Origin: Paramoeba atlantica
Lineage: Eukaryota; Protista; Discosea
Length of the DNA stretch: 64,000 nt
Assembly: GCA_977017575.1 (NCBI GenBank)
Contig: CDRNVI010000029.1
Location: 1-64,000 of the forward strand
Direction of reading: 5' to 3'
The position numbers were made by a program, and so were the translations under genes. Shown one piece after another: positions 1 to 64,000 of this stretch. Below the pieces are notes generated by a model. That model was given only the letters and a program-made list of their open reading frames with translations. It made no database searches and had not been told where the DNA came from. Each line of letters begins with the position of its first letter. The stretch's first letter is position 1.

Positions 1-190
1 TCTTTCTTCCTCTTTCTTCCTCTTTCTTCCTCTTTCTTCCTCTTTCTTCCTCTTTCTTCCTCTTTCTTCCTCTTTCTTCCTCTTTCTTCCTCTTTCTTCC
101 TCTTTCTTCCTCTTTCTTCCTCTTTCTTCCTCTTTCTTCCTCTTTCTTCCTCTTTCTTCCTCTTTCTTCCTCTTTCTTCCTCTTTCTTCC
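1..190. repeat. Perfect tandem repeat (TCTTTCTTCC) x19, cut off by the window start
   Basis: Read directly from the sequence; abuts a family G 3' fragment at 191. Confidence 0.97.
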
Positions 191-815
191 ACCCATGTAC
201 AGCAACAAAAATATACGGACTCAGTCCGTGACGCTAACGGGGTGACGGCCGGGTCATTTGCGGAGCGCTATGCTACCGAAAACAAGAGAAGACAACGGGA
301 AGAGGCTAACACGGCTGGGTACAAGTTCGCGGCAATGGTAGTAGAGTCCTATGGCGCCTGGAGTCCCAGCGCCATGGCGGTTCTTAGGGAAATTTCAACT
401 AGAAAGTCGGCGAACTCAGGGGATACCCTCCCTAAAAGCGATGCCTTGCATCACCTCCTTTCATCTCTCAACATTACCCTCATGAGGTCGCAAGCTCGCA
501 TGCTTGTATTACGATCCCCAGCGGCGGGCCCTGACACAGTGCTCTTAGGTTACGGAAAAGAGGAGTAGGAGCTCAGTAGGAAAGTGAAGGAGTCGGTGTC
601 AAGGGAGGAGGCCTCGTTTCTATTTGCTGGTTTTTCTCGGGTGGTTTCTTTTTGGGGCTTTGGGTATTCGTTTTTTTGGGGAAGGTTTTTTTTTTTTGGG
701 GGGTGGGAACGGGTTCTTATTTGCTGTTTTTTGGGCCGTTTGCTCGGTTGAACATTCTTTTACTTTTCGTACAGTTGCTTGTTTCTATTCTGAGCCTAAC
801 TTTAAAAAGTATCTA
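191..815 (+). mobile_element. 5'-truncated family G 3' end: RLE C-terminus (ORF 242-568) plus T-rich 3' UTR
   Basis: Near-identical to about 58877-59490; encodes MVVESYGAWS...LNITLMRSQARM. Confidence 0.92.
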
Positions 816-1092
816 AAAAAAAAAAAAAGTAGTAAGTGTCTAGCAAAAAAAAGGACTCCACTCTTTCGGCCGAAGAAAAATTTCAGAAACTACGAGAATT
901 GCATCCTGATGGGCCCCAAAAAAAAAAAAAAAAAAAAAAAAAGGCTAATATCGGGTCAAATGCCCCGGAAGGGGGTTATAATTTTCAAAAAAAAAAAAAA
1001 AAAAATTCTAACACACACTTTCATTCAAATATTTTCATCGCATTCAAACGAACACAGAATTTAGGCAAAAAAAAAAAAAAAAAAACTTAGAT
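816..1092 (+). other. Mosaic of short fragments separated by oligo(A) runs; one fragment encodes a family-E-like peptide
   Basis: About 853-917 reads DSTLSAEEKFQKLRELHPDGP versus family E DSALPLWEKVDKLRDLHPKGP; several A runs of 8-25 nt. Confidence 0.7.
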
Positions 1093-1128
1093 ACTTAACG
1101 ATAAAGATACAGTTTCTGTACCTTGTTG
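1093..1128 (+). other. Spliced-leader-like sequence heading family A copy 1
   Basis: ACTTAACGATAAAGATACAGTTTCTGTACCTTGTTG; CAGTTTCTGTAC core and TTG end as in kinetoplastid/diplonemid SL exons. Confidence 0.85.
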
Positions 1129-1174
1129 AATTATTTTCTTTATTTCATCTTTTCCAGGTACGCGGTTCTTTCTC

Positions 1175-4100
1175 ATGTCTGAAGACGATCTTCTCAAAGC
1201 CTCACCTCCGCCGATGGACGACGATTCATTTTTACAAGAGGAAGCAGTACACAATAGAGGATCCTGGGACCAGTTTGCTGGAAACGCACATCTCATTAAG
1301 CAACGGAGTACGTATAACGAATTGCTCTACACGACCCCTATTCCTGCGAACATTCCGGAAGAATGGAACATGAACGCCGCCTTGATCTCAACTGAGAACC
1401 AGACACGTGATACGGGACAGGTAGATAGTAGCGATGAGGAAACAAACCACTCACGAGTCATCAGATTACATCATGGACACCAAAAAATGCAATCTGATAG
1501 TAACACTATCACTAAAAAGTTTACTCGATGCCAACCATCTTCCACACCCCCAAGCGTCAAAGGGAATCGGGGAATCGTAAAGTCTCATCGAAAAGCGCGC
1601 GAACCAGCTACACCTCGAAAAGGGGAAGCGACGGAACATAACCCCGAAAACAACTCTCCACGCCAAATAATACAAGGAACTTCCCTTGAAATCCCACCTT
1701 CGACGAGCGAACCAGTTCTCACGTTTCCATCTTCCCAAAACCGTCCGACACAAAGGGAGTGCCCCGCAGAAAACTGTATTTGGAAAACTCGTGCCCATGG
1801 AGGTCAATGGCAGTCGTACTACAACCACGTTGCTTACCGACACGGAAATAACATACCCAATGACTGGTGGACAAAGGAAGGACGATTTCTCTGCGACGCA
1901 TGCGGTCGTCATTACGATATTAGCAAGAAAACTTCTCATTTGAATCATTGTAAAATGCAATCTACACCGCCCTCCTCGCAGCCGCCCTCACAACCACAGC
2001 AGCCTTCACAGCTGTCAGAGTCCGGAGAAGCCATGTACGATATGCAAGGTACGCATAGTCTACCGTCCCTAGAGGAAGTTTGCACGACCCAAATAAGCAC
2101 GTGCAAGGATGTCCCACACCGATGTCGATATCTGTGGACCAGAATTTTTACCGCAGCCCTCTCCACCGCGGTAAACGAAAACTCACTGAGAGCCTGGACC
2201 CTTCTTGCCTTGCTTCCGAAATGCGTCCTACCAGCCCCGTACCGAGGAGGCCGTAAAGCTCACAAGTCCTATACCTCCTACATCTCAAAGCGAATGGAAC
2301 TTTGGATACAAGGCCAATATACCACCCTATGGGCCCAAGCAAATTCGGAGCATGACAGGAAGCGCTCAAAAGTGCCGAATAATGAGATTGAGGGTGAAGA
2401 AGACAAGGCTGCAATACGGGCTGAAATTCTGGTTCGCCAAGGAGAATTTTCCCGAGGCATGGCTGCCCTTACTGCAGCTCCACTTGCACCATACAGCGAG
2501 GAAACCCTGCTAAAGCTGCAGGAAAAACACCCTAGCCCCCATGGTAATCCCATCTCGTGCCCCCTACCTCCCCTGGAAGAAGAAGCTTTAAAACTGGACG
2601 AATCCGAGGTAAGAAAAGCAGTAGATACCTTCCGTCGCGGATCCTCTGCTGGGACTATGGGGCTCCGGCCTGAACACCTCCAAACAGCGCTTCAAGAGCA
2701 CGTCGACCAGAATATGAATCCTCTTACGACGCTCACTTCCTTCGTAAACCATCTTCTAGCTGGCAAAGCCCCAGACGAAGTGCAACCTTTTTTTGCAGGG
2801 GCACGGCTATGCGCACTCGAAAAAGGGGAAGATGACGTGCGGCCTATCGCTGCGGGGGAAACCCTTAGACGCCTGGTGAGCAAGGCAGTATGCCTTTCGA
2901 TAAAAGAAAAAGCAGGATCCTTCTTTGGACGTCGTCAATACGGAGTCGCAGCGTCTGCTGGGGCGGAAAGAGTGATACACCTTTGTCGCCGTCTAATGAG
3001 AAATAATGAAGAAAATGAGAACATAACGTTCTGTAAGGTGGATCTTCGGAACGCCTTTAATAACGTGAGCCGACCCGTCTTCATCTTCCTCACACGAAAG
3101 CATTTCCCTGAACTATCCCCATGGGTAGAATGGTGTTATGCCAATCATAGCTGTCTTACATTCGGCGATGATTTTATCCCCTCGGCAGAAGGAGTGCAAC
3201 AAGGAGACCCTCTGGGCCCACTCCTCTTCTCTTTGGTGTTAGCAGAGGTAACAGAAGAAATTGCATCAAATTCTAACCTACGAACACAATTATGGTATTT
3301 AGATGACGGTGTGCTTGTAGGTGATCCCAAAGAAGTCCGTAAAGCCCTAGACGTCCTCGACGAGATAGGACCGAAGTGGGGACTCTTCCTGAATCTCTCC
3401 AAGTGCGAGATCATTACCCCCCCAGCATCAGCTCATACCTCCGTTTTCTTTCCTGACATCCCCAGTGATAAAATACGGTACGACGGGAACTTCGACATTC
3501 TTGGAAGCCCAATAGGCTCTGCGGAACACTGTGCGGAGTTTCTCATGACACACGCGATTGAACCAGCCCGCGAAACATTAGAAGCTACTGCTGTGTTAGA
3601 AGATCCCCAAATAGCTCTCGCACTAATACGGCAATGTTCGGGGTTTTGTCAGATGGTGTACGCACTGCGCACCACTCCTCCCCAAGCCCTTGGAGAATTA
3701 TGCCAAAAACTTGACTCTCATCTAGTCCAGGCCGTGGAGCACGCAATTTCTCCCTTAGGCGTCGCCGCTCGCGACCAAATACAACGACCAAAACGCCACG
3801 GCGGGTTCGGACTTCGCTCATCAATTCTCCACCAGTCAGCAGCCTACGTTTCTTCCGTCGCGCACGCCGCTAGCTTGGACAACTGGGACCCCACAGAAGC
3901 TGAGGGATTTTCCAGCTCAGCACATGACATAAATGACAAAGTTGGGACTGATCTGGTTGATCCATACACTGGACGCATTACCAAACCTAGTGTGCCTGGT
4001 GAATATCATGCAAATCGGAGCATCCTTTCCCGCCCAGCGAAAAGAAAACTCGCACTATCCCTCAATCACTCCCTTCTCCCGGTCTCGACGGATCAGGAAA

Positions 4101-4975
4101 AGATCATCCCGAGGCAAAAACATCTCAGCCAAGCTATCTCGGATAGGGAATTTCAAACGGCATATTCAAAGGCAGACGCAAGAACGCGGGCGCGATGGAT
4201 CTCGCAGTCCGGAAAAGGGGCCGGAAACTGGGCTTTCGCAACTCCCTCCAAGACCAGAGGCTACGCTTTCACTCACACGGAGTTTCGTACCCTAACACGC
4301 TGGTGGCTAGGCATGGGCGTCTTCCCCGAAGATCGGCCTTGCCCAGCTGACGGGTGCACCCTTCCCTTGCTCAAGAATGGAGAGCACGCTTTGCTCTGCA
4401 AGAACGGCCATGGTATCATCTCACGGCACAACGCTCTGGCCCAACAATTTACATCGTTCTGCAGCAGGGCCTTCCTGGCGCCACAGAGAGAGAAGAGTTT
4501 GGGAAATCGGGGTCCTGGGGGGGCTCTCACGAGACCAGCGGACGTATTTCTGCCAACGGCCTCCATCGCCAAAGGATCTTTAGCGCAAGGCATGGTCCTA
4601 GATTTTGCGGTCACTCACGCACAGCAAACAAAGTATTCGGACTCAGTCCACAATGCTAGCTGGGTGACCCCGGGGTCTTTTGCTGAGCACTTCGCGGAGA
4701 CCAAGGCGCGACAGCGACAAGAAGCAGAAAAAGCAGGACATCTCTTCACAGCGATGGTAGTGGAATCCTTTGGTTCCTGGAGCGAGAGTGCGCTAGCGTT
4801 ACTCCGGGACATCGGAACCCAACGGGCGAATGCGTCCAAAGGGCTCCTTTCACGAGACCAAGCGCGAAACGATCTCCTAACGGATCTGAACGTGACGCTA
4901 ATGCGTTCTCAAGCCAGGATGATGGTTTCGCGCATCCGCGTAGAGGACCCAGCGGATCCTTTGGTAGAGGCTTAA
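1175..4975 (+). CDS. Family A polyprotein, 1266 aa: LsmAD-like, C2H2 and CCHC Zn fingers, reverse transcriptase, Zn knuckle, RLE
   Basis: WDQF...STYNELLYTT; CPAENC...HVAYRH; RPIAAGE, DLRNAFN, QQGDPLGP, WYLDDG; HALLC...RHN, RPADV, LDFAV. Confidence 0.95.
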   Translation: MSEDDLLKASPPPMDDDSFLQEEAVHNRGSWDQFAGNAHLIKQRSTYNELLYTTPIPANIPEEWNMNAALISTENQTRDTGQVDSSDEETNHSRVIRLHHGHQKMQSDSNTITKKFTRCQPSSTPPSVKGNRGIVKSHRKAREPATPRKGEATEHNPENNSPRQIIQGTSLEIPPSTSEPVLTFPSSQNRPTQRECPAENCIWKTRAHGGQWQSYYNHVAYRHGNNIPNDWWTKEGRFLCDACGRHYDISKKTSHLNHCKMQSTPPSSQPPSQPQQPSQLSESGEAMYDMQGTHSLPSLEEVCTTQISTCKDVPHRCRYLWTRIFTAALSTAVNENSLRAWTLLALLPKCVLPAPYRGGRKAHKSYTSYISKRMELWIQGQYTTLWAQANSEHDRKRSKVPNNEIEGEEDKAAIRAEILVRQGEFSRGMAALTAAPLAPYSEETLLKLQEKHPSPHGNPISCPLPPLEEEALKLDESEVRKAVDTFRRGSSAGTMGLRPEHLQTALQEHVDQNMNPLTTLTSFVNHLLAGKAPDEVQPFFAGARLCALEKGEDDVRPIAAGETLRRLVSKAVCLSIKEKAGSFFGRRQYGVAASAGAERVIHLCRRLMRNNEENENITFCKVDLRNAFNNVSRPVFIFLTRKHFPELSPWVEWCYANHSCLTFGDDFIPSAEGVQQGDPLGPLLFSLVLAEVTEEIASNSNLRTQLWYLDDGVLVGDPKEVRKALDVLDEIGPKWGLFLNLSKCEIITPPASAHTSVFFPDIPSDKIRYDGNFDILGSPIGSAEHCAEFLMTHAIEPARETLEATAVLEDPQIALALIRQCSGFCQMVYALRTTPPQALGELCQKLDSHLVQAVEHAISPLGVAARDQIQRPKRHGGFGLRSSILHQSAAYVSSVAHAASLDNWDPTEAEGFSSSAHDINDKVGTDLVDPYTGRITKPSVPGEYHANRSILSRPAKRKLALSLNHSLLPVSTDQEKIIPRQKHLSQAISDREFQTAYSKADARTRARWISQSGKGAGNWAFATPSKTRGYAFTHTEFRTLTRWWLGMGVFPEDRPCPADGCTLPLLKNGEHALLCKNGHGIISRHNALAQQFTSFCSRAFLAPQREKSLGNRGPGGALTRPADVFLPTASIAKGSLAQGMVLDFAVTHAQQTKYSDSVHNASWVTPGSFAEHFAETKARQRQEAEKAGHLFTAMVVESFGSWSESALALLRDIGTQRANASKGLLSRDQARNDLLTDLNVTLMRSQARMMVSRIRVEDPADPLVEA

Positions 4976-5020
4976 GCCTCTACTGACAGTCCAGTTTCAG
5001 CACGAAGACGCCATAATATC

Positions 5021-5259
5021 CAGGACGGGTGCTGGCCGGGTCGACAGAGTCTATACTCACGCCTAGCCCGCGAGGGCTAGGTACCCCAAGTGAGGTAGTA
5101 CACGGGTAGTGAATCTCCTCCCCGTCGGTCAGCATCCTGTTTCGCGACCGTGTCGCTGTCGACACAGGCCCGCGCCTGCGCCCTCCCATATAGCAAGGGA
5201 AGGGTTCACAAGTCAGGCCGTGGAGTGGTCGAAAGACCCGGTCCGGAACGCGCGAATGG
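5021..5259 (+). ncRNA. Conserved structured 3' UTR RNA element (family A)
   Basis: Several helices with compensatory changes versus families B and C; GCGA and GAAA tetraloops. Confidence 0.8.
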
Positions 5260-5588
5260 ATTGGGCGTGGATTGCTTCCTTTTTTATTATTATTGTTATC
5301 AGAATCATAAATAACTTAAGGCAGGTTGAATTACTAGTTTTGGGCTACAACATGTGAAATTGCTAATTTGATTGCTTGTTTACAAATCATATACCCCCCC
5401 CAATGGACCTTCATGGTTCATGTATTGGGTAATATAGAGGCAATGCCGCTTTTCATACTTCTCCCCCCTTAAAAAAAAAAAAAAAAACGATAAAGATACG
5501 TTAAAGATACTTTAACGATAAAGATACAGTTTCTGTACCTTGTTGAATTTTTTTTTTACGTAGTATTCTCTCGGGGCCCAGCTCTTTT

Positions 5589-8500
5589 ATGACGCAAACC
5601 AATACTCCTCAGAGCCCCGCACGCTCGAACGAGGACCACCCCTCATTCCATATGAGTGCAAAGGAAGGAGCTCTCAGCGTAGGCGCTCTCGCCGACGAAG
5701 AACGTGCGCACTCTCTCGGCAGTTGGGACCAATTCCAAGGAAACAAGCATTTGATTCGCGCTGTCAGCACATACGACGAACAACTCTACACTACACCAAT
5801 CCCGGCGAATATTCCTAAGGAATGGTTGGAACGCGCACGTCACATCTCCCAGGAAAAGGAAACCCCAGACACGGGCCACGTAGAGGCCGAAGACGAGGAG
5901 ATGCAGCACTGTGGGGTGAGAAGGCAGAAAATTACTCACGAGGCTACACCCACATCAAAGATCCCCGATGAAGCTCGGACGCTCAAATCCGCAGTGAAGG
6001 ATGCTCTTTCCCACCAAGGTCGAAACACTTCCCCATCGAAAGGAGTTACCAAAGCGGACTCGCGCTCGTCAAGGCGAACACCGGAGCCCCGGACATATTT
6101 CTCTTCACCGCGACACGCCGCAAACCAAAATAACTTCGCTGAAAAGACACAAACAAGAGAAGAGACTCGGGAATGTCCGGCCATGGGATGCACTTGGAGA
6201 AGTCTGCCGCACGGAGGGTCTTGGCAAGCGTTTTATAACCACGTCGCGTGTCGCCACGGAAACGGAGTTCCCGCTACCTGGTGGGATGCAGAAGGCCGAT
6301 TTCTTTGCAACTTATGCGGGCGCCATTATGACATCAACAAAAGGGAAGCTCATCCACAAGCCTGCAAAGGGAACGTTGCGAACCCCCAAATCCCATCGCG
6401 CGCAGCACACTCGAGCGACCCAAGCCACCTTCCGGGGACTCAAACTCATCACTCTGAACTTCCCTCGCTATCCTCTATCTGCACGCTGCGCCTGAACACT
6501 TGCAAGGACGTGCCTCCACGTTGCCGTCAACTGTGGGGAGAAATTATCACCAAAGCAGCCCAAAACGCAGTCACCGAAAACTCTACAGCCGCGTGGACCC
6601 TATTCGCCATGCTCCCCAAGTGCTTACTACCCGCCCCACACCGAGGAGGACGTAAGAACCACACAACTTACGCATCATACGTCCAGAAGTGCATGAACCG
6701 ATGGCTCGCGCAAGATTATGTCTCCCTATGGAATGAAGCAGTAGACAACGCACTCAAGAAACAATCTGTAGCCCCTACAACCGTTCACGACGAAGAGGAA
6801 AAGGCAGCTATCCGAGCAGAGCTTCTAGCTCGACAAGGCGAGTACTCTAGGGGTATGGCTGCACTCACGGCGGATGCTATGGCGCCTGACGACGAAGACA
6901 CACTCCTCAAACTTCAGAGCAAGCACCCGCCCCGACATCCAGACAGTGACATCATCGACTATACGCCTCCGCCCACAGCGCCCCTAATAATGGATGAACC
7001 CGTGGTAGCGAAAACTATCAAGAGCTTTCACCGGGGTTCCTCGTCCGGAACCATGGGTTTACGACCCGAGCACTTGCAAGCTGTACTCCTGGCGCACGTA
7101 GATAACACCGTGAAACCCCTTACTGCCCTTAAAAACCTCGTGAATCATCTACTAGCCGGGAAAGAACCCCTAGAGGTACAACCATATTTTGCGGGAGCCA
7201 GACTTTGCGCGCTTGAAAAGGGCGAAAATGACGTCCGCCCCATAGCAGCGGGAGAAACGATACGTCGATTGGTAAGCAAAGCGGCTTGCAATGCAGTGAG
7301 GAGCAAAGCCAGGGAATTTTTTAAGGGACTACAGTTCGGCGTCGCGACACCGGCCGGTTCGGAACGAATAATTCACACTTGCCGGCACGCAATGACAATT
7401 CATACGGACAACCCCGACATGGTATTATGTAAAGTCGACCTAAGCAACGCATTCAACAACGTTAGCAGAGCAACTTTCTTGAAACTTGTAGGCGAACATT
7501 TTCCGGAATTGTTCCCCTGGGCTAGCTGGTGCTATACGACAACTAGTGCTTTGACCTATCGTGACCACACACTCCTTTCGGATGAAGGCGTCCAACAGGG
7601 CGATCCCCTGGGACCACTTTTCTTTTCACTGGTCTCCTTGGAACTTGCAAAAGAAATCTATCACCAGGCCGACCTGGACTTGCAGCTATGGTACCTAGAC
7701 GACGGGATTCTCATTGGCAGGGCAGAAGACGTCAGGAATTCGTTGGATACAATCGCCAGAGTAGGTCCGCGATGGGGCCTATATCTGAACATGTCCAAGT
7801 GCGAAATAATCACCCCCCCTGCCTCGGCTAACGTTGTAACCATATTTCCGGACATACCCGACGCCAAAATAAACGTGTGCGGTAACTTTAGTGTCCTAGG
7901 AAGCCCAATTGGGTCCCCTGAGTACTGTACTGAATATCTGCTGACACACGCGGTTGAGCCCGCTGAAATGGCCCTTGATGCCATAACCAGAATCCGGGAC
8001 CCCCAGGTAGCCATGGCGCTAATTCGACAATGTGCTGGATTCTGCAAATTGGTACATGCTCTACGAACGACGCCCCCGCAATCAGTTATGAACCTCTGCA
8101 AGCGGCTCGACGACTTCCTAATGCACGCGGTCGAATCCACTCTATGTCCTTTGCCTCCCTCCGCACGCGCCCAAATTCAGCGCTTGAAAAGACACGGAGG
8201 TTTCGGTTTAAAATCGGCGACCGTGCACGCATCCTCCGCTTACGCCTCCTCTGTAGTTTTCGCGGCGGCCACGGACTCATGGGATGCTTCAGAAGTGGAG
8301 GGCTTTCTACAATCGATTGAAGACGTGAATTCGAAAGTTGGTATCAGTCTACTCGACTCAAACGGACTCGTGCGTTCCATCCCGCGCCATAAATGTGAAG
8401 AACTCTCCCCCAAAGCTCGCTTCACCAAGAGATCTCGCGAGGGAGAAACCAGACATCCCTTTGAACCCGCAAATCCGCCTTCCCTTCCTCGTGACCGCGC

Positions 8501-9455
8501 ATTGCCTCATTCCGAAGACTTTCCACACGATACAAACCCCCTTTACGCATCCGAAGATTGCGTTGACGCGCAGCCACCCGACTGGGCAAGTAATAGCGTC
8601 CCCCGCCAAAAAGACATAAGTTACGCGATCTCTGCCACAGAGTTCTCGCACGCATATGAAAACGCCGACGCCCGGACTCGCGCACGCTGGGCTTCTCAGT
8701 GTGGTAAAGGAGCAAGCAGTTGGGCGTTCGTAACTCCTTCCAGAGACACGGGCCACGCCTTTAACCCCACAGAATTCCGCATCCTATCCCGCTGGTGGTT
8801 AGGTGTGCCCGTGTACGGGGAAGAAGGTACATGTCCCAAGGGGAACTGCACACCCCCATTGGACATACACGGCGATCACGCTCTCACATGCAAGCACGGG
8901 GACGGTATCATCGGCCGTCACAACGCCTTGGCCGATCACTTTGCCGATACTTGCAGTAACGCACGCCTAGCTCCCCAACGGGAAAAAAGCCTCGGGAACC
9001 GGGGCCCCGGAGGCGCTCTGACTAGGCCCGGGGACGTCTTCCTTCCGAGTCTCTTCCTCGGGAAACCTATCGTGCTTGACTTCGCGGTCACTCACGCCCA
9101 GCAATCTAAATACACGGACACAGTCCGAAATGCTAGCTGGGTGGCCGCGGGGTCCTTCGCAGAGCATTATGCCTCAGAGCAGAAAGTCCGACAACGCCGT
9201 GAATCTGAAGATGCCGGAAGCGATTTCACAGCTATGGTGGTCGAGAGCTATGGCTCTTGGAGTGCCAGTGCTTTAGCCGTTCTCCGGAAGGTTGGAGAAC
9301 GAAGGGCAAAAGCGTCCAACGGTATCTTGACAGACGAGGCCTCTACGCTCCGTCTCGTGACCGACATGAACGTAACATTGATGCGTTGCCAGGCACGCAT
9401 GATGATTACGCGCCTGCCGGCTGTGGACCCCTTGCCCCCTTTAATCGAGCAATAG
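5589..9455 (+). CDS. Family B polyprotein, 1288 aa: LsmAD-like, Zn fingers, RT, RLE
   Basis: WDQF...STYDEQLYTT; CPAMGC...HVACRH; QQGDPLGP; WYLDDG; HALTC...RHN; RPGDV; LDFAV. Confidence 0.95.
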   Translation: MTQTNTPQSPARSNEDHPSFHMSAKEGALSVGALADEERAHSLGSWDQFQGNKHLIRAVSTYDEQLYTTPIPANIPKEWLERARHISQEKETPDTGHVEAEDEEMQHCGVRRQKITHEATPTSKIPDEARTLKSAVKDALSHQGRNTSPSKGVTKADSRSSRRTPEPRTYFSSPRHAANQNNFAEKTQTREETRECPAMGCTWRSLPHGGSWQAFYNHVACRHGNGVPATWWDAEGRFLCNLCGRHYDINKREAHPQACKGNVANPQIPSRAAHSSDPSHLPGTQTHHSELPSLSSICTLRLNTCKDVPPRCRQLWGEIITKAAQNAVTENSTAAWTLFAMLPKCLLPAPHRGGRKNHTTYASYVQKCMNRWLAQDYVSLWNEAVDNALKKQSVAPTTVHDEEEKAAIRAELLARQGEYSRGMAALTADAMAPDDEDTLLKLQSKHPPRHPDSDIIDYTPPPTAPLIMDEPVVAKTIKSFHRGSSSGTMGLRPEHLQAVLLAHVDNTVKPLTALKNLVNHLLAGKEPLEVQPYFAGARLCALEKGENDVRPIAAGETIRRLVSKAACNAVRSKAREFFKGLQFGVATPAGSERIIHTCRHAMTIHTDNPDMVLCKVDLSNAFNNVSRATFLKLVGEHFPELFPWASWCYTTTSALTYRDHTLLSDEGVQQGDPLGPLFFSLVSLELAKEIYHQADLDLQLWYLDDGILIGRAEDVRNSLDTIARVGPRWGLYLNMSKCEIITPPASANVVTIFPDIPDAKINVCGNFSVLGSPIGSPEYCTEYLLTHAVEPAEMALDAITRIRDPQVAMALIRQCAGFCKLVHALRTTPPQSVMNLCKRLDDFLMHAVESTLCPLPPSARAQIQRLKRHGGFGLKSATVHASSAYASSVVFAAATDSWDASEVEGFLQSIEDVNSKVGISLLDSNGLVRSIPRHKCEELSPKARFTKRSREGETRHPFEPANPPSLPRDRALPHSEDFPHDTNPLYASEDCVDAQPPDWASNSVPRQKDISYAISATEFSHAYENADARTRARWASQCGKGASSWAFVTPSRDTGHAFNPTEFRILSRWWLGVPVYGEEGTCPKGNCTPPLDIHGDHALTCKHGDGIIGRHNALADHFADTCSNARLAPQREKSLGNRGPGGALTRPGDVFLPSLFLGKPIVLDFAVTHAQQSKYTDTVRNASWVAAGSFAEHYASEQKVRQRRESEDAGSDFTAMVVESYGSWSASALAVLRKVGERRAKASNGILTDEASTLRLVTDMNVTLMRCQARMMITRLPAVDPLPPLIEQ

Positions 9456-9510
9456 CACGATGACGGATGTGCAAGATGGGCCGCTCAGCCGGAACTCGAA
9501 CAGCTGGTCC

Positions 9511-9748
9511 GGATGCTGGTCGATGCCGGCAGGGTCTATGCTCACGCCTAGTCCGCCAGGGCTAGGTACTCCAAGTGAGGTAGGACATGGGTAGGGAACT
9601 TTGTTCCTCCCCGTCGGCCAGCATCATGCTCCGCGACCGTGCCGCTGTCGGCACAGGCCCATTGCTTGCGCCCTCTCGTACAACAAGAGAAGGGTTACCA
9701 AGGCAAGCTGGGAGAGGTCGAAAGACCCGGTCCGGAACGCGCGAATGG
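9511..9748 (+). ncRNA. Conserved structured 3' UTR RNA element (family B)
   Basis: Homologous to 5021-5259 with covariation. Confidence 0.8.
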
Positions 9749-9990: not shown

Positions 9991-10025
<35 letters not shown>

Positions 10026-10033
10026 TAGAAGAT

Positions 10034-10916: not shown

Positions 10917-10918
<2 letters not shown>

Positions 10919-48291: not shown

Positions 48292-48312
48292 TTTTTTTTT
48301 TTTTTTTTTTTT

Positions 48313-54434: not shown

Positions 54435-54465
<31 letters not shown>

Positions 54466-54727
54466 GTATAACAAGGGAAAGGTCCACAAGTCAGGCCGTG
54501 GAGAGGTCGAAAGACCCGGTCCGGAACGCGCGAATGGTTGAGGAGCCGCCTGCAGGCCGGGTGAGGCGAAGCTGAGGGAGACCTTACCCCCCCTGAAAAG
54601 TTGAAAAGTTGGGTAGGGGAAAGCAGGAAAGTAGGGAGAAAGGTGGGAAAAGTATGTCAAGAGGTGAGAAAGAGGAGAAAGAGAGAGAAAAATTTTCTTT
54701 ATTTGCATAAAAACAAAAAAAAAAAAA
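54466..54727 (+). mobile_element. 3'-end-only fragment J (3' half of the structured RNA plus purine-rich UTR)
   Basis: CAGGCCGTGGAGAGGTCGAAAGACCCGGTCCGGAACGCGCGAATGG. Confidence 0.8.
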
Positions 54728-54844
54728 GAGGAAAAATCTTTTAAATCTCTTAAAAAATCTTTAACGATAAAGATACAGTTTCTGTACCTTGTTGAATTAT
54801 TTTTCTTCATTTCAATTACTTTTCAGGCACGAGCCTCCCCCCCT

Positions 54845-57800
54845 ATGCCCGACGCCGACAAAACGACGACCCATTCCACGACACACCCCGAAGCAAAGCG
54901 AGAATCAAACTTTGGTGACGAGGCCGCCTCACACGAATTGGGTTCTTGGGATCAATTTGAAGCGAACAAACACCTCACGATCGGGGAAAGCACATATGAT
55001 GAGGCGCTGTATACTACTAAACTTCCTGACGATCTTCCGCCGGAATTGACACAGCGATCCGAAGAAATCGCTCGAAGTATCATCAAATCGCGCGCAGGCC
55101 CTACACCAGATACGGGGAACGTTGAAGGAATGTCGGAAGCGGATGTTCACTCCAATGTTCGTCATGATGAGGAATTAAACTCTGTTCTCAAGTTCTCCGG
55201 ACTAGGAACCTCTTCACCCAGCCAACTCACGATTTCAAATCAGGCTGTGAAAGGGAAATATCTCCGAAAAACTAATCAGAATGGTTACAACTATGACGAG
55301 CAAAGAGTCATTTTCCCTGACCTCACGCCACAGGACCTGGATTTTACTGTCAGCAGAAGCCCTGGAGGCCGAAAAAAGAAAAAGCACCCCAAGAGCGACC
55401 GTCACTCCCGAGTAGACCTAGAGTCCGAAACCGACAGTGGAGATGGTGCAGTCCCAGAATGCCCTCCCAACGACAGCGCTTCTGAATCCCCAGATGGAAA
55501 ACGCAAGCGTCGCGAGCTTACCACCGAAACGGCCAATGGCTTATCGACCGCAAATGTGACGACGGACACCCAACAGACCAAAGAGCGAAACTGTCCAGTG
55601 GAGACGTGTACATGGAAGACGGGGCCACACGGTGGCCAATGGCGAGCTTTTTATAACCATGTTGCCCACAAGCACTGGGAGGAAGTCTCAGACTCTTGGT
55701 GGACAGGGGAAGGGAGATTTCTGTGTGTAAAATGCTGCAGGCACTATGACTTAGGAAAGCAAGAATCCCATGAGAAACATTGCGAGTTTCAACTCTCACC
55801 CTCTCAACTCTCACGCTCTCGAGAACAGAAAGCACCCGTTGCCCCTACCAATTCTGCAACCACTACTCCCTCAGAGCGCGCCGCCCAAACCGAAGTCGCC
55901 ACCTTACCTGCACAGACAGCCGCTGACCTAGAGGCCAAGAATGGAAAGATGAGTATCGACGAACCTCTGCCGCCCCTAGCCTCCATATGCTCCGCGCCTA
56001 TCAACACCTGCAAGGATATTCCAAACAGTTGCCGACAAGCATGGGCCAAAATATTCTGCGAATATCTATCCTCAGCTGTCCGGGAAAACACGACTAAGGC
56101 TTGGACGCTCCTTGCAATGTTGCCAAAGTGTGTGTTGCCGGCCCCAAGGCGCGGAGGTCATAGGGCGAAAACTTCTTACGCTTCACACGTCCGGAAATGT
56201 CTAGCCAAATGGTCGTCAAAACAATATCTATCACTTTGGAACGAAACATGTAAGACTTTGAATCGTAAGAAACGTGCTGCGCAAGCAACAAGCCTAGAAG
56301 ACGAGGGGAAGAAAGCGTGTCTTCGCGCGGAGCGACTGGCCCGCGACGGAGAACTTTCTCGCGCCATGACCGCACTGACTTCTTCGCCGCTAGCACCAGA
56401 CGACGACAACACGTACGCCAAACTTCAGGCCAAACACCCCCCACGAATCTCCGCATCCACAACATCCCCCAGCTTAACTCCGGAAACAGAACCACTCAAA
56501 GTCACCGAGGAAGAAGTCGCAGCTGCGCTCTCAACCTTCCACAGAGGATCATCAGGTGGCGCACTTTGCCTCCGCCCAGAACACGTGCAAGCGGCAATGC
56601 AATATCACAATGACGGGCACACAAATCCACTGGGCAAGCTCACAAATTTCACCAACCATATGCTCGCTGGGAAGTTACCACTCGACGTTCAAGACCACTT
56701 TGCCGGAGGAAGGCTATGTGCTTTGGAAAAGGGAGAACACGACGTGCGCCCAATAGCCGCTGGAGAAACGCTCCGCCGTCTGGTGAGTAAAGTGGCCTGC
56801 CTATCAGTAAAAGCGCGAGCCCGCAAAATTTTCAAAGGCCACCAGTACGGGGTAGCCACGCCCGCCGGGGCCGAGCGAGTTATACATCTGTGTCGCCAGG
56901 CCTTTGCTGCTCGCACGGAAGATGACGACTTTGTTCTCTGTAAAATCGACCTACGTAATGCCTTCAACCAAGTTTCAAGGGACTGGTTCATAGCACTAAC
57001 ACGCGAGCATTTCCCCACGCTTACTCCTTACGTCGAATGGTGCTACACTTCGGAAAGTAAGCTTACCTTTGGAACACGCGTTATTAAATCTCGTGAGGGT
57101 GTCCAGCAAGGGGACCCTTTGGGCCCTCTTCTTTTCTCGTTAGTCATGAGGGAAGTCGCCTCAGAAATTCACGCAGCAGCCCCCAAATTAGACCTAAACC
57201 TCTGGTACCTGGATGATGGAGTTTTGGCTGGCACTTCCTGTGATGTGCGACACGCGTTCGACGTTATCGAAATGAAGGGTCCACAATGGGGCCTACACCT
57301 CAACGCTGCAAAATGTGAGATTATTACCCACCCAGCATCTTCTCATCGTTCTTCTGTTTTTCCCGATCTCCCTGGCCCTAACAAAAACCTCGAAGGCAAT
57401 TTTTACATTCTGGGAAGCCCCGTTGGATCGCCAGAGTTTTGTCGTGAATATCTCGTCAACAATGCAGTCGAAATGGCAGAAGATTCTCTGGACGCTATAA
57501 CGCACCTCGAAGACCCCCAGGTTGCCTTATCCCTCATTCGTCACTGCACTGGCTTCTGCCAGATGGTTTACTCCCTACGAACAACCCCAACATCTGAACT
57601 TCGGGATCTCTGTCGGCGCTTGGACGACGCCGTGCAACGCGCGGTAGAGAATTTTTTCCGTCCTCTGACCCCCGAGGCCCGCCGTCAAACACAACGAAAC
57701 AAGCGATTTGGCGGGTTAGGACTCCGTTCCGCGGAAGAGCACTCTACTTCAGCCTATATCGCCTCTGTCGCATTTGCATCGGAGCTAGATCGCTGGGACC

Positions 57801-59253
57801 CCACGGAGGCAGAAGGTTTCGAAGAAGCCGTAAGCGATGTCAATAAAAGGGTGGGGAAAGACATCGTAGACATTCAATCAGGGAGAATACCGAAAGGTTT
57901 CGCCTTGTCATCCACTCCGCCTTTCAGTAAACGTGGCATTACAGAATCCAGCACCGAATCAGTAATCCCTCGGCAACGAGATCTAAGCGATGCAATCTCA
58001 TCTCACGAGTTTCATCAAGCACTCTCCCTCGCTGACCCACGTACGAGGGCTCGATGGATTTCGGAAACGGGGCACGGAGCAGCAGAATGGGCTTTTGTAT
58101 TGCCGTCGAAAAAGAACGGCCACGCTTATACCCCAACCGAGTTTCGGACTCTGGTACGTTGGTGGCTAGGGGAGCAAATATATCCGGGTCCCCGATCTTG
58201 TCCCATGGAGAAGTGCACCCAACCGTTGGGTCCTGAGGGCGATCACGCATTGGCTTGCAAAAGTGGACATGGTATCACCTCGCGGCATAATGCCCTGGCC
58301 GCAGAATTTTCTTCTGAATGTTCTAAGGCTGGGTTCACTACCCAGAGGGAAATGAGCTTGGGAAACAAGGGGCCGGGGGGCGCCCTCACCAGGCCTGGTG
58401 ATGTCTAATAGTTCACGTTTTGAAATTTAGCCGAGGGGCGGCTATATATTTGCCTGCTGTCCCTTCGGGGCACATAATTTTCTCAAATTATGATGTAGTA
58501 TTCTCTAATTGCATGGAGGGGGGTGTTTACTCGTTTGTTATATTCTTGTTAGGTTGTTATTTTGTTACGTTTAAAGTTTTGTGCCCACCCACCGAGCCCC
58601 CAGCCATTTGGCCGAGGGTTCCGGTGGGGGGGAACCCCGTTAACAGAGTGACATTGATTGTGTTGTTTTATGCAGGCTTGTTTCTTTTCCATCTTTGTGC
58701 GTGTGAAATGAATGAATGATATGTTGTGTCATTTTGAATTACGATTGAGCTATTCATAGTTGTTCATTTATTCATATATGTTATCAGTGTATATGTTTCC
58801 AGGGAGCCCCTCGGCGTGGATTTCTTCATCAAAAATTTCGGGCTTGGCGAGGGTCTTGTGCTTGACTTTGCCGTCACCCATGTACAGCAACAAAAATATA
58901 CGGACTCAGTCCGTGACGCTAACGGGGTGACGGCCGGGTCATTTGCGGAGCGCTATGCTACCGAGAACAAGAGAAGACAACGGGAAGAGGCTAACACGGC
59001 TGGGTACAAGTTCGCGGCAATGGTAGTAGAGTCCTATGGCGCCTGGAGTCCCAGCGCCATGGCGGTTCTTAGGGAAATTTCAACTAGAAAGATGGCGAAC
59101 TCAGGGGATACCCTCCCTAAAAGCGATGCCTTGCATCACCTCCTTTCATCTCTCAACATTACCCTCATGAGGTCGCAAGCTCGCATGCTTGTATTACGAT
59201 CCCCAGCGGCGGTCCCTGACACAGTGCTCTTAGGTTACGGAAAAGAGGAGTAG
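54845..59253 (+). CDS. Family G polyprotein (LsmAD-like, Zn fingers, RT, RLE), interrupted within the RLE
   Basis: WDQFEANK...STYDEALYTTKL...EEIARSI; QQGDPLGP; WYLDDG; RPGDV joins FIKNFGLGEGLVLDFAV when 58406-58824 is removed. Confidence 0.85.
58406..58824. other. 419-nt insertion in the family G ORF
   Basis: Removal restores the frame; TCT at both junctions; 9-bp inverted repeat at 58430-58438 and 58807-58815. Confidence 0.8.
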
Positions 59254-59500
59254 GAGCTCAGTAGGAAAGTGAAGGAGTCGGTGTCAAGGGAGGAGGCCTC
59301 GTTTCTATTTGCTGGTTTTCTCGGGTGGTTTCTTTTTGGGGCTTCGTTTCTTTTTGGGTATTCGTTTTTTGGGGAAGGTTTTTTTTGGGGGTGGGAACGG
59401 GTTCTTATTTGCTGTTTTTTGGGCCGTTTGCTCGGTTGAACATTCTTTTACTTTTCGTACAGTTGCTTGTTTCTATTCTGAGCCTAACTTTAAAAAAAAA

Positions 59501-59629
59501 AATGTGAAATTGCTAATTTGATTGCTTGTTTACAAATCATATACCCCCCCCAATGGACCTACTTGGTTCGTCTACTGAGTAAAAATATAGAGGCAATGCC
59601 GCGTTTTATACTTCTCCCCCCTATTTATT

Positions 59630-59663
<34 letters not shown>
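59501..59663 (+). mobile_element. Solo A/C-type 3' terminal fragment with poly(A)
   Basis: tgtgaaattgctaatttgattgc...CTCCCCCCTATTTATTGC-An, as at about 5353-5470. Confidence 0.8.
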
Positions 59664-59664
<1 letters not shown>

Positions 59665-59685
59665 GATAAAGATAAAAAGCTAAAT

Positions 59686-62600
59686 ACTTTAACGATAAAG
59701 ATACAGTTTCTGTACCTTGTTGAAATTTTTTTTTACGTAGTATTCTCTCGGGGCCCAGCTCTTTTATGACGCAAACCAATACTCCTCAGAGCCCCGCACG
59801 CTCGAACGAGGACCACCCCTCATTCCATATGAGTGCAAAGGAAGGAGCTCTCAGCGTAGGCGCTCTCGCCGACGAAGAACGTGCGCACTCTCTCGGCAGT
59901 TGGGACCAATTCCAAGGAAACAAGCATTTGATTCGCGCTGTCAGCACATACGACGAACAACTCTACACTACACCAATCCCGGCGAATATTCCTAAGGAAT
60001 GGTTGGAACGCGCACGTCACATCTCCCAGGAAAAGGAAACCCCAGACACGGGCCACGTAGAGGCCGAAGACGAGGAGATGCAGCACTGTGGGGTGAGAAG
60101 GCAGAAAATTACTCACGAGGCTACACCCACATCAAAGATCCCCGATGAAGCTCGGACGCTCAAATCCGCAGTGAAGGATGCTCTTTCCCACCAAGGTCGA
60201 AACACTTCCCCATCGAAAGGAGTGACCAAAGCGGACTCGCGCTCGTCAAGGCGAACACCGGAGCCCCGGACATATTTCTCTTCACCGCGACACGCCGCAA
60301 ACCAAAATAACTTCGCTGAAAAGACACAAACAAGAGAAGAGACTCGGGAATGTCCGGCCATGGGATGCACTTGGAGAAGTCTGCCGCACGGAGGGTCTTG
60401 GCAAGCGTTTTATAACCACGTCGCGTGTCGCCACGGAAACGGAGTTCCCGCTACCTGGTGGGATGCAGAAGGCCGATTTCTTTGCAACTTATGCGGGCGC
60501 CATTATGACATCAACAAAAGGGAAGCTCATCCACAAGCCTGCAAAGGGAACGTTGCGAACCCCCAAATCCCATCGCGCGCAGCACACTCGAGCGACCCAA
60601 GCCACCTTCCGGGGACTCAAACTCATCACTCTGAACTTCCCTCGCTATCCTCTATCTGCACGCTGCGCCTGAACACTTGCAAGGACGTGCCTCCACGTTG
60701 CCGTCAACTGTGGGGAGAAATTATCACCAAAGCAGCCCAAAACGCAGTCACCGAAAACTCTACAGCCGCGTGGACCCTATTCGCCATGCTCCCCAAGTGC
60801 TTACTACCCGCCCCACACCGAGGAGGACGTAAGAACCACACAACTTACGCATCATACGTCCAGAAGTGCATGAACCGATGGCTCGCGCAAGATTATGTCT
60901 CCCTATGGAATGAAGCAGTAGACAACGCACTCAAGAAACAATCTGTAGCCCCTACAACCGTTCACGACGAAGAGGAAAAGGCAGCTATCCGAGCAGAGCT
61001 TCTAGCTCGACAAGGCGAGTACTCTAGGGGTATGGCTGCACTCACGGCGGATGCTATGGCGCCTGACGACGAAGACACACTCCTCAAACTTCAGAGCAAG
61101 CACCCGCCCCGACATCCAGACAGTGACATCATCGACTATACGCCTCCGCCCACAGCGCCCCTAATAATGGATGAACCCGTGGTAGCGAAAACTATCAAGA
61201 GCTTTCACCGGGGTTCCTCGTCCGGAACCATGGGTTTACGACCCGAGCACTTGCAAGCTGTACTCCTGGCGCACGTAGATAACACCGTGAAACCCCTTAC
61301 TTCCCTTAAAAACCTCGTGAATCATCTACTAGCCGGGAAAGCACCCCTAGAGGTACAACCATATTTTGCGGGAGCCAGACTTTGCGCGCTTGAAAAGGGC
61401 GAAAATGACGTCCGCCCCATAGCAGCGGGAGAAACGATACGTCGATTGGTAAGCAAAGCGGCTTGCAATGCAGTGAGGAGCAAAGCCAGGGAATTTTTTA
61501 AGGGACTACAGTTCGGCGTCGCGACACCGGCCGGTTCGGAACGAATAATTCACACTTGCCGGCACGCAATGACAATTCATACGGACAACCCCGACATGGT
61601 ATTATGTAAAGTCGACCTAAGCAACGCATTCAACAACGTTAGCAGAGCAACTTTCTTGAAACTTGTAGGCGAACATTTTCCGGAATTGTTCCCCTGGGCT
61701 AGCTGGTGCTATACGACAACTAGTGCTTTGACCTATCGTGACCACACACTCCTTTCGGATGAAGGCGTCCAACAGGGCGATCCCCTGGGACCACTTTTCT
61801 TTTCACTGGTCTCCTTGGAACTTGCAAAAGAAATCTATCACCAGGCCGACCTGGACTTGCAGCTATGGTACCTAGACGACGGGATTCTCATTGGCAGGGC
61901 AGAAGACGTCAGGAATTCGTTGGATACAATCGCCAGAGTAGGTCCGCGATGGGGCCTATATCTGAACATGTCCAAGTGCGAAATAATCACCCCCCCTGCC
62001 TCGGCTAACGTTGTAACCATATTTCCGGACATACCCGACGCCAAAATAAACGTGTGCGGTAACTTTAGTGTCCTAGGAAGCCCAATTGGGTCCCCTGAGT
62101 ACTGTACTGAATATCTGCTGACACACGCGGTTGAGCCCGCTGAAATGGCCCTTGATGCCATAACCAGAATCCGGGACCCCCAGGTAGCCATGGCGCTAAT
62201 TCGACAATGTGCTGGATTCTGCAAATTGGTACATGCTCTACGAACGACGCCCCCGCAATCAGTTATGAACCTCTGCAAGCGGCTCGACGACTTCCTAATG
62301 CACGCGGTCGAATCCACTCTATGTCCTTTGCCTCCCTCCGCACGCGCCCAAATTCAGCGCTTGAAAAGACACGGAGGTTTCGGTTTAAAATCGGCGACCG
62401 TGCACGCATCCTCCGCTTACGCCTCCTCTGTAGTTTTCGCGGCGGCCACGGACTCATGGGATGCTTCAGAAGTGGAGGGCTTTCTACAATCGATTGAAGA
62501 CGTGAATTCGAAAGTTGGTATCAGTCTACTCGACTCAAACGGACTCGTGCGTTCCATCCCGCGCCATAAATGTGAAGAACTCTCCCCCAAAGCTCGCTTC

Positions 62601-64000
62601 ACCAAGAGATCTCGCGAGGGAGAAACCAGACATCCCTTTGAACCCGCAAATCCGCCTTCCCTTCCTCGTGACCGCGCATTGCCTCATTCCGAAGACTTTC
62701 CACACGATACAAACCCCCTTTACGCATCCGAAGATTGCGTTGACGCGCAGCCACCCGACTGGGCAAGTAATAGCGTCCCCCGCCAAAAAGACATAAGTTA
62801 CGCGATCTCTGCCACAGAGTTCTCGCACGCATATGAAAACGCCGACGCCCGGACTCGCGCACGCTGGGCTTCTCAGTGTGGTAAAGGAGCAAGCAGTTGG
62901 GCGTTCGTAACTCCTTCCAGAGACACGGGCCACGCCTTTAACCCCACAGAATTCCGCATCCTATCCCGCTGGTGGTTAGGTGTGCCCGTGTACGGGGAAG
63001 AAGGTACATGTCCCAAGGGGAACTGCACACTCCCATTGGACATACACGGCGATCACGCTCTCACATGCAAGCACGGGGACGGTATCATCGGCCGTCACAA
63101 CGCCTTGGCCGATCACTTTGCCGATACTTGCAGTAACGCACGCCTAGCTCCCCAACGGGAAAAAAGCCTCGGGAACCGGGGCCCCGGAGGCGCTCTGACT
63201 AGGCCCGGGGACGTCTTCCTTCCGAGTCTCTTCCTCGGGAAACCTATCGTGCTTGACTTCGCGGTCACTCACGCCCAGCAATCTAAATACACGGACACAG
63301 TCCGAAATGCTAGCTGGGTGGCCGCGGGGTCCTTCGCAGAGCATTATGCCTCAGAGCAGAAAGTCCGACAACGCCGTGAATCTGAAGATGCCGGAAGCGA
63401 TTTCACAGCTATGGTGGTCGAGAGCTATGGCTCTTGGAGTGCCAGTGCTTTAGCCGTTCTCCGGAAGGTTGGAGAACGAAGGGCAAAAGCGTCCAACGGT
63501 ATCTTGACAGACGAGGCCTCTACGCTCCGTCTCGTGACCGACATGAACGTAACATTGATGCGTTGCCAGGCACGCATGATGATTACGCGCCTGCCGGCTG
63601 TGGACCCCTTGCCCCCTTTAATCGAGCAATAGCACGATGACGGATGTGCAAGATGGGCCGCTCAGCCGGAACTCGAACAGCTGGTCCGGATGCTGGTCGA
63701 TGCCGGCAGGGTCTATGCTCACGCCTAGTCCGCCAGGGCTAGGTACTCCAAGTGAGGTAGGACATGGGTAGGGAACTTTGTTCCTCCCCGTCGGCCAGCA
63801 TCATGCTCCGCGACCGTGCCGCTGTCGGCACAGGCCCATTGCTTGCGCCCTCTCGTACAACAAGAGAAGGGTTACCAAGGCAAGCTGGGAGAGGTCGAAA
63901 GACCCGGTCCGGAACGCGCGAATGGTTCGGGGAAAGTCTGCCCCTCCTAGCCGAGGGAGACCTTACCCTCCCTGGAAAGCTGGTAAGATTGGTAAGGGGA
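59686..64000 (+). mobile_element. Family B copy 3 (SL at 59686-59722; structured RNA 63688-63925), runs off the window
   Basis: Near-identical to B1. Confidence 0.93.
59766..63632 (+). CDS. Family B polyprotein, 1288 aa
   Basis: Intact ORF; only a few amino-acid differences from B1. Confidence 0.95.
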   Translation: MTQTNTPQSPARSNEDHPSFHMSAKEGALSVGALADEERAHSLGSWDQFQGNKHLIRAVSTYDEQLYTTPIPANIPKEWLERARHISQEKETPDTGHVEAEDEEMQHCGVRRQKITHEATPTSKIPDEARTLKSAVKDALSHQGRNTSPSKGVTKADSRSSRRTPEPRTYFSSPRHAANQNNFAEKTQTREETRECPAMGCTWRSLPHGGSWQAFYNHVACRHGNGVPATWWDAEGRFLCNLCGRHYDINKREAHPQACKGNVANPQIPSRAAHSSDPSHLPGTQTHHSELPSLSSICTLRLNTCKDVPPRCRQLWGEIITKAAQNAVTENSTAAWTLFAMLPKCLLPAPHRGGRKNHTTYASYVQKCMNRWLAQDYVSLWNEAVDNALKKQSVAPTTVHDEEEKAAIRAELLARQGEYSRGMAALTADAMAPDDEDTLLKLQSKHPPRHPDSDIIDYTPPPTAPLIMDEPVVAKTIKSFHRGSSSGTMGLRPEHLQAVLLAHVDNTVKPLTSLKNLVNHLLAGKAPLEVQPYFAGARLCALEKGENDVRPIAAGETIRRLVSKAACNAVRSKAREFFKGLQFGVATPAGSERIIHTCRHAMTIHTDNPDMVLCKVDLSNAFNNVSRATFLKLVGEHFPELFPWASWCYTTTSALTYRDHTLLSDEGVQQGDPLGPLFFSLVSLELAKEIYHQADLDLQLWYLDDGILIGRAEDVRNSLDTIARVGPRWGLYLNMSKCEIITPPASANVVTIFPDIPDAKINVCGNFSVLGSPIGSPEYCTEYLLTHAVEPAEMALDAITRIRDPQVAMALIRQCAGFCKLVHALRTTPPQSVMNLCKRLDDFLMHAVESTLCPLPPSARAQIQRLKRHGGFGLKSATVHASSAYASSVVFAAATDSWDASEVEGFLQSIEDVNSKVGISLLDSNGLVRSIPRHKCEELSPKARFTKRSREGETRHPFEPANPPSLPRDRALPHSEDFPHDTNPLYASEDCVDAQPPDWASNSVPRQKDISYAISATEFSHAYENADARTRARWASQCGKGASSWAFVTPSRDTGHAFNPTEFRILSRWWLGVPVYGEEGTCPKGNCTLPLDIHGDHALTCKHGDGIIGRHNALADHFADTCSNARLAPQREKSLGNRGPGGALTRPGDVFLPSLFLGKPIVLDFAVTHAQQSKYTDTVRNASWVAAGSFAEHYASEQKVRQRRESEDAGSDFTAMVVESYGSWSASALAVLRKVGERRAKASNGILTDEASTLRLVTDMNVTLMRCQARMMITRLPAVDPLPPLIEQ

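Follow-up and report, generated by a model that had tools for sequence, protein, structure and literature searches.

Intronless spliced leaders head poly(A)-tailed retrotransposon copies joined tail to head in a Paramoeba atlantica assembly

Results

The leader-headed units of the array

The stretch analysed here, hereafter the window, comprises the first 64,000 nucleotides of contig C29 (CDRNVI010000029.1; C29:1–64000) in the 45.7-Mb Paramoeba atlantica assembly GCA_977017575.1, and consists entirely of retrotransposon sequence, arranged as about 34 poly(A)-ended units, nine of which are headed by a 38-nt leader. Our results support the view that this leader is a true spliced leader (SL) exon lacking its intron, which was brought in by the RNA that was copied and is not the target into which the elements inserted. 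With the window cut at poly(A)/poly(T) runs of at least 10, the leader-headed units are assigned to families A, B (three copies), F (three copies) and G, together with a short D chimera; the remainder are 5′-truncated copies or tail modules of 8–285 nt. No unique DNA was found at the unit junctions, and the pieces compared with the genome all recur elsewhere, in agreement with a preliminary description of the window that reported no host spacer.

Nine occurrences of a 26-nt leader core were found in the window (zero expected by chance), at the positions for which the preliminary description had reported leaders straight after A-rich tails. Each occurrence is part of a near-complete leader of 37–38 nt, in sense orientation, located behind a run of 13–36 A letters, and in all nine heads the SL is followed directly by a family-specific 5′-untranslated region (5′UTR). 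None of the window leaders is followed by GT, the start of the SL intron, as had also been reported. In most heads, stuttered partial leader pieces, or one or two extra letters, lie between the A run and the leader. The nine units had been described as full-length copies of five element types; the leader heads bear this out, except that the D copy is an 896-bp chimera and not full-length.

The leader is a spliced-leader exon

The 38-nt leader is identical to the exon of SL RNA genes elsewhere in the genome, where the intron start GTATGAG follows it. The native upstream sequence together with the whole exon is present at 31 places, 30 of which continue into the intron. The SL RNA gene array, which the preliminary description had proposed to locate, is thereby represented by 30 intron-bearing genes arranged as tandem repeats; 5S rRNA is also present in one of the repeats (1454 bp). 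These arrays are found on C97, C107, C11, C74, C3 and C24, with periods of 2.56 kb, about 2.7 kb, 1.45 kb (the repeat with 5S) and 297 bp; on C74, two gaps of 7.3 kb in the SL repeats could hold 4.6-kb insertions. Several orphan SL introns, which have no exact exon upstream, lie on C25, C83, C87, C6 and C45.

Direct evidence that the leader is trans-spliced onto host mRNA comes from one gene family. In run X5, which behaves as RNA, a contig joins the leader to a host 5′UTR ending in ATGGCG, and in the genome 25 tandem gene copies have CTTTAG, a normal acceptor, ahead of the same 5′UTR. The leader is trans-spliced because the contig joins the SL to a 5′UTR whose gene has an AG at that point; the proposed check for the leader at the 5′ ends of host mRNAs is, for this family, answered in the affirmative. 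The 25 copies of this highly expressed host gene, with a period of 2.77 kb, lie at C21:423–460 kb, C32:312–315 kb and C33:155–177 kb, and their acceptor AG matches the X5 junction.

The leader is carried by the copied RNA

The six truncated copies named in the preliminary description adjoin the preceding A run with no leader letters in between, as had been stated, and the same holds for about 19 further short units; the sequences behind the tails have nothing in common but the A run. Genome-wide, at least 517 leaders are followed by a letter other than G, with dozens of different continuations, and SL gene sequence lies upstream of only one of them, against the possibility, raised beforehand, that most copies sit in SL RNA genes. 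SL gene flanks are present at none of the nine window heads, which thus do not show the fixed-position insertion into the SL exon of SLACS, CZAR and CRE elements, and no A run followed by the SL intron was found in the genome. The DNA copies start with a complete intronless leader and finish in poly(A), as SL-tagged retrocopies do. Because the truncated units bear no SL remnant and 30 of the 31 SL exons are intact, the leader is rejected as the insertion target. The earlier proposal that the SL is part of the copied RNA is upheld by these two observations together with the fusion of the intronless exon to the element 5′UTRs; so is the suggestion of a lifestyle distinct from SL-gene targeting, as the copies lie outside SL genes and all but one of the native exons keep their intron.

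The junctions between poly(A) and leader

An A run of at least 8 within 80 nt upstream was found for all nine window heads and for 9 of 21 intronless leaders in 200 kb of two other contigs (2.5% expected by chance). On those contigs, the heads behind tails are the ones leading into an ORF (open reading frame) of the window type. No clear target-site duplications were seen at the solitary heads in the same 200 kb, several of which belong to other element classes.

In a tally of 49 distinct poly(A)–leader junctions, which are the first ones among the genome-wide matches, 18 begin at leader nt 1–3, 10 have one extra T before C3 and 5 begin cleanly at C9, the rest having a few odd letters. The favoured junction points come after AA dinucleotides of the leader, and three of the four mapped truncation points come after an A. 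Since both follow A letters, the junction points match what joining via A microhomology would give. The errors at the first leader positions might, by analogy, reflect the modified cap nucleotides known from trypanosomatids.

The heads differ between copies that are otherwise nearly the same: B copies 99.5–99.9% alike carry four different head structures, and those of family A also vary from copy to copy. The junctions therefore arise anew at each event, and RNAs with the leader at their 5′ end are produced again and again.

The elements and their proteins

Each family has one long ORF of 1187–1360 aa, with a Pfam RVT_1 match in mid-protein (E 1e-15 to 1e-19); the Pfam scan of the element ORFs gave no Exo_endo_phos match indicative of an N-terminal apurinic/apyrimidinic-type endonuclease. 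In the alignment, conserved CPxxGC...H and CxxC...H...C blocks lie ahead of the reverse transcriptase (RT), whilst a conserved CCHC block (CP..C..H...C) follows it, succeeded by RHN, E, RPGD and D.AVTH, an order which we take to be the pattern of R2/CRE/NeSL-type nucleases. A profile search of the PDB returned no solved structure matching the C-terminal region, and an atlas search with this region gave zf-RVT leads only, at weak scores (0.87–0.88). From their motifs, the elements are single-ORF retrotransposons of the non-LTR type (LTR, long terminal repeat) with zinc fingers, an RT and a predicted C-terminal nuclease-like motif, resembling R2/CRE/NeSL in plan.

The nearest named proteins are hypothetical proteins of Diplonema, at 23–27% identity. 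Near the N-terminus, families A, B, D and G have a weak LsmAD-like segment, and metagenome relatives with 50% RT identity (P0026, P0027) have an MLLE domain, the C-terminal domain of poly(A)-binding protein. Relatives at this level of identity end in a hairpin and a long A run; the kinetoplastid leader was not found on them, though poly(A) is present. LsmAD and MLLE modules are parts of proteins that work with poly(A)-binding protein, and their presence may hint at a poly(A)-centred way of life.

Among the six F copies, which are 99.5–99.98% alike, poly(A) begins at three different points in the same 57-nt terminal module, and genome-wide the ends of family A copies lie near 4215 or 4339, with about nine at each point and others between the two. 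Because poly(A) begins at varied points of the same F and A tails, the templates resemble processed mRNAs in their 3′ ends as well, with variable poly(A) sites.

Chimeras and compound pieces

The D unit consists of the leader and about 750 nt of a D 5′ region, fused, with an overlap of ACC, to the final 55 nt of a B tail, and is either a template-switch chimera or a short non-autonomous element, as judged from its make-up. All six F copies share a compound tail, made of the body, A18, a B-like 57-nt module and a final A run, so that a former junction is now part of element F. The pair of tiny units at 943–1066 recurs jointly at five or more other loci, and another compound tail recurs with different neighbours. 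The two-unit piece 'F truncated at 411 + full F' (8.25 kb) is present twice at 99.988% identity; its copies have the same 5′ edge within an A tract and poly(A) 13 nt apart. We read them as probable retrocopies of one two-unit read-through RNA, the alternative being DNA duplication with a small deletion. Because compound pieces are shared among loci with other neighbours, re-copying of multi-unit read-through RNAs, plus DNA duplication, appears to be a third contributing route.

The tiny tailed units were also considered as ends of host mRNAs; this was rejected, since they are repeated element tail modules, and no host mRNA 3′ end was found among those checked. Elsewhere in the genome, trains of about a dozen 3′-terminal A-like fragments, 80–500 nt long and 66–97% identical to family A, are stacked at C9:290000–296000 and C1:191500–194500.

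Architecture of the window

The units (Table 1) form three orientation blocks: plus from 1 to 18173, minus from 18174 to about 53560, and plus from about 53560 to 64000. Families not named in the preliminary description include the A-like unit at 33356, E, H and many tail modules. On direct reading, no telomere repeat is seen at the contig start, which has a 10-mer simple repeat instead, and with three opposing blocks the units are not uniformly oriented toward a chromosome end as in telomeric arrays.

Table 1. Features of the 64-kb window in order of position
Feature	Position	Strand	Remarks
Simple repeat (TCTTTCTTCC)n at contig start, joined to truncated G unit	1–189	.	Read directly
G-family unit, 5′-truncated, tail A14	190–828	+	96.7% to 58875–59496
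Three tiny poly(A)-ended tail modules (89, 44 and 61 nt)	829–1085	+	Last two recur jointly at five or more other loci
Family A, full-length: stutter, SL, 5′UTR, 1266-aa ORF, tail A17	1086–5487	+	13 near-full genomic copies, 96–99%
Family B, full-length, 1288-aa ORF, tail A29; partial SL pieces precede full SL	5488–10021	+	Leader, ORF and tail scans
Chimera, 896 bp: SL and D 5′ part (LsmAD-like ORF), fused at about 10826 to last 55 nt of B tail, A36	10022–10917	+	
E-like unit, 5′-truncated, tail A15	10918–13390	+	11276–12648 = 15632–17004 at 99.9%
E-family unit, 5′-truncated, 1061-aa RT ORF, no tail	13391–17584	+	
Element H, 5′ part; begins at SL nt 23, cut at 18173 (other copies continue)	17585–18173	+	
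End of minus block: two copies of 18-mer satellite and A11, then tail modules of 138 and 285 nt	18174–18642	-	
Family A unit truncated at A position ~2342, tail A12	18643–20747	-	
Family F, full-length, 1360-aa ORF: SL head, body, A18, 57-nt B-like tail module, A28	20748–25086	-	
Two-unit piece, copy 1: F truncated at 411 and full F; poly(A) added after ACTCAT	25087–33374	-	99.988% to 36168–44422
A-like (79%) truncated unit, tail A19	33356–36131	-	
Two-unit piece, copy 2: same 5′ edge within A tract; poly(A) 13 nt further on, after CCCCCCT	36132–44422	-	
F unit truncated at 448	44404–48291	-	
A-like 637-nt unit; scrap of 8 nt and A13	48292–48949	-	
Family B, full-length, broken ORF (821 and 481 aa); three partial SL pieces in head	48950–53478	-	
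Orientation switch; small tailed units, some plus and some minus, each repeated elsewhere in genome	53479–54727	.	
Family G, full-length, 1187-aa ORF without end of nuclease region, tail A11	54728–59502	+	
A-like tail fragment, 161 nt, A32	59503–59663	+	
Family B, full-length, runs past window end; head stutter unlike other B copies	59664–64000	+	

Element H has 20 or more other copies, in varied upstream contexts, and its start corresponds to leader nt 23, right after a CAG within the leader. The minus block was considered as an insertion inside this element and the idea rejected, as the remainder of H is absent from the window. An 18-mer satellite, GGGTCTTAACAAAAGAAA, lies beside H heads (also on contig C63) and at the end of the minus block, 18174–18219; a second 18-mer, CGTTGTCTTAATAAAAAA, is located downstream of early-polyadenylated B tails (L038).

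Discussion

The best overall explanation of the array, to which we give roughly even credence, is that cDNA copies of SL-headed, polyadenylated element RNAs were serially joined to older tails, with template switching and re-copying in addition. The element RNAs would start with the host 38-nt SL and end in poly(A) added at variable sites, such that a cDNA reaching the 5′ end of the RNA would write the leader into DNA. New cDNAs would preferentially attach to A tracts, in other words to the tails of pre-existing units; most likely, reverse transcription would prime on the T strand that faces an older tail, and the 5′ end would be sealed to the remaining A tract via a microhomology of one or two A letters. 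The outcome would be spacer-free, multi-family chains in the same orientation. Template switching by the RT would give chimeras and stuttered leader pieces, such as are seen as products, whilst the re-copying of read-through RNAs over two or more units, plus some DNA duplication, would account for the shared compound pieces. Fusion of an element to a native SL promoter, as in the family A copy on C41 described below, is one possible route to an SL-started RNA.

We rank this serial joining to tails above the building of a whole chain at once, in a single target-primed event during which the RT jumps from the 5′ end of one RNA (or from a stall) to the next poly(A); switching and re-copying are nevertheless considered real contributors. 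R2 RT jumps end to end in vitro, and the extra letters and stutters at the SL 5′ end, the tiny abortive tail modules and the D/B chimera all fit a jump-prone enzyme. Yet any poly(A) RNA should serve such an enzyme, and the inserted pieces are all element tails, with no host mRNA 3′ end found among the tiny units; moreover, units next to one another match their closest relatives at anything from 79% to 99.98%, three orientation blocks are present in the window and compound pieces recur beside different neighbours, which together make growth in one run unlikely. The preliminary description had offered both priming on existing ends or tails and serial template jumping as means of growth; poly(A) as the joining partner and the switch chimeras agree with it, whilst the two routes are not separable by any sequence feature. 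Growth mostly at the DNA level, in which a few insertions are multiplied through segmental duplication or unequal crossing-over involving near-identical units and A tracts, would explain the doubled 8.25-kb piece, the close likeness of the six F copies and the tandem periods of 598 bp and 5 kb on other contigs. It cannot yield many families, varied 5′ truncations, varied B head stutters or varied poly(A) starts, and most neighbouring units already show largely independent 5′ and 3′ ends; even the ends of the duplicated piece coincide exactly with unit edges, its poly(A) site being new, and we regard such growth as improbable for the array as a whole.

A cut within the leader of earlier units, for example between A8 and C9, would make each insertion the next target, in the manner of CRE/SLACS. 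The recurrent junction of poly(A) with CGATAAAG (five clean and four stuttered cases), the A copy adjoining a real SL gene promoter and exon on C41, the orphan SL introns and the irregular spacing of SL repeats on C74 could all be read in this way. This explanation is already largely refuted, and very improbable, given the intact SL genes (30 of 31), the lack of any A run followed by the SL intron, and the roughly 25 truncated or tiny window units that stand behind poly(A) without SL letters, with only the A run common to what follows the tails; the C9 class of junction is explained by AA microhomology. Least probable of all is an assembly, cDNA or amplification artefact. The window does lie at a contig start, and the read evidence for junctions comes from short-read unitigs; against this, the same architecture occurs on many contigs, copies differ by 0.01–3% and not by 0, and four separate runs contain the elements and poly(A)-to-fragment joints.

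Several observations weigh against the serial joining of SL-headed cDNAs to older tails, the inseparability of tail priming from end-to-end RNA jumping in a single run being one of them. The three orientation blocks and the cut in H at 18173 reflect a rearrangement that neither simple model predicts. The edges of the array, and hence any target-site duplication, lie outside the 64-kb window, and with reads in the form of short-read unitigs the individual long-range joints are as given by the assembly. The fold of the nuclease has no structural match, and an AF2 model of the C-terminal region is poor (pLDDT 44). Finally, the SL-headed DNA has TG and not AG ahead of the 5′UTR, and ordinary trans-splicing therefore cannot recreate the same junction.

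This last point makes it doubtful that the SL is re-added by trans-splicing in each round. The SL precedes each of the 14 exact family A heads and every B head that was found; a genome search gave no AG-preceded copy of either family, so that AG-preceded master copies were rejected, and retrocopies spliced at an AG inside the 5′UTR were likewise rejected, as none was found. The preliminary description, in which the leader was trans-spliced onto the element RNA, is not borne out on this point for a process repeated every generation.

A different source of SL-started RNA may be recorded on contig C41. At C41:280786–280900, 48 nt of native SL gene upstream sequence (without mismatch) and the whole exon are followed by the family A 5′UTR. 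This A copy (280786–290959) runs to A position 1320 and resumes 5.8 kb later from 1306; the resulting 15-nt overlap is perhaps the target duplication of an insertion. No SL intron was found on C41, and no such fusion to the SL promoter was found for B, F or G in this assembly. Transcription from the SL promoter may once have made this locus a source; alternatively, recombination via the 38-nt homology may have left it as a by-product. Tentatively, we suggest that this clade of elements took the host SL as a heritable 5′ end, with SL-started RNA being remade without an AG either via SL-promoter fusion, as on C41, or by an RT finishing on SL RNA or a free SL exon. The elements would spread by joining tails, and the arrays would be both product and source, being read through and re-copied; we think it rather unlikely that this proposal is correct in full.

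In protein plan, the elements are like SLACS, CZAR and CRE1/CRE2 of trypanosomatids and NeSL-1 of C. elegans, with one large RT protein that has zinc fingers and, at its C-terminus, a CCHC block and a nuclease-like motif, and like them they are tied to the spliced leader; one of the A copies even lies at an SL gene. Protein plan and host lineage thus point to the SLACS/CRE group, although its defining insertion into SL genes is not seen here and protein searches found no sequence likeness to named SLACS/CRE/NeSL members. SLACS, CZAR, CRE and NeSL-1 insert at a fixed position in the SL exon of SL RNA genes, and have SL gene sequence on their flanks. In the present elements, by contrast, the whole exon is fused without its intron to the element 5′UTR, and the copies lie outside SL genes.

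A DNA-encoded SL at the 5′ end is known from dinoflagellate DinoSL retrogenes, where it marks copies of mature trans-spliced mRNA (PMC5585692, PMC6050394). The DinoSL retrogenes are host genes, often with nested relic leaders formed by re-splicing at an AG in the leader, whereas the tagged RNAs here are those of retrotransposons and the copies stand in tail-to-head chains. Nested relic leaders of that kind were not found in the window; its partial repeats (7–10 nt of the SL 3′ end) are not preceded by AG and start after TG, AC or TA.

Spacer-free chains of poly(A)-ended, variably 5′-truncated units from more than one family are also formed by HeT-A/TART/TAHRE in Drosophila, Zepp in Chlorella and GilM/GilT in Giardia, and Zepp elements are reported to nest in earlier tails. 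The window differs from these chains in lacking uniform orientation and a telomere repeat, in its host leader, and in a protein that is not of the jockey/L1 type. Extra junction letters and two-RNA chimeras recall template jumping by R2 RT and chimeric L1 retrocopies such as U6-L1; these have been seen in vitro or as infrequent chimeras of two parts, and are not known as routine builders of arrays of tens of kilobases. A literature search found neither the leader string nor leader-headed non-LTR arrays, nor the combination of leader tagging and tail-to-head arrays for kinetoplastid retrotransposons, and array-building from leader-headed, poly(A)-tailed copies seems to be undescribed.

The array indicates that, in a trans-splicing organism, the leader can serve retrotransposons as a part of their own RNA and not as a target, which makes them look like ordinary mRNAs. 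Hundreds of natural junctions record the behaviour of an R2-like RT at RNA 5′ ends and at poly(A), and bear on template jumping and 5′ junction formation, both of which are hard to study in vivo. How the exact leader–5′UTR junction is inherited without a splice acceptor is a puzzle for which the C41 fusion provides a testable candidate locus. For annotation, intronless leaders serve as marks of retrocopies across this genome.

Leader sequence also occurs in two further settings. On C1 (L023, L024; tandem units of 5093 bp) and at L037:1783, an AG is followed by X, the leader and X again, where X is the first 12–36 nt after the normal acceptor, with no poly(A) nearby; this pattern probably represents another element class, one with direct repeats that are split, or a 5′ junction that arose through homology. 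In addition, a dispersed element at about 400 further places beyond L001–L004 and L007–L010 begins with the leader from nt 12–16 to 38 followed by GTACATTTT, and differs from the SL RNA genes as well as from the window's own elements.

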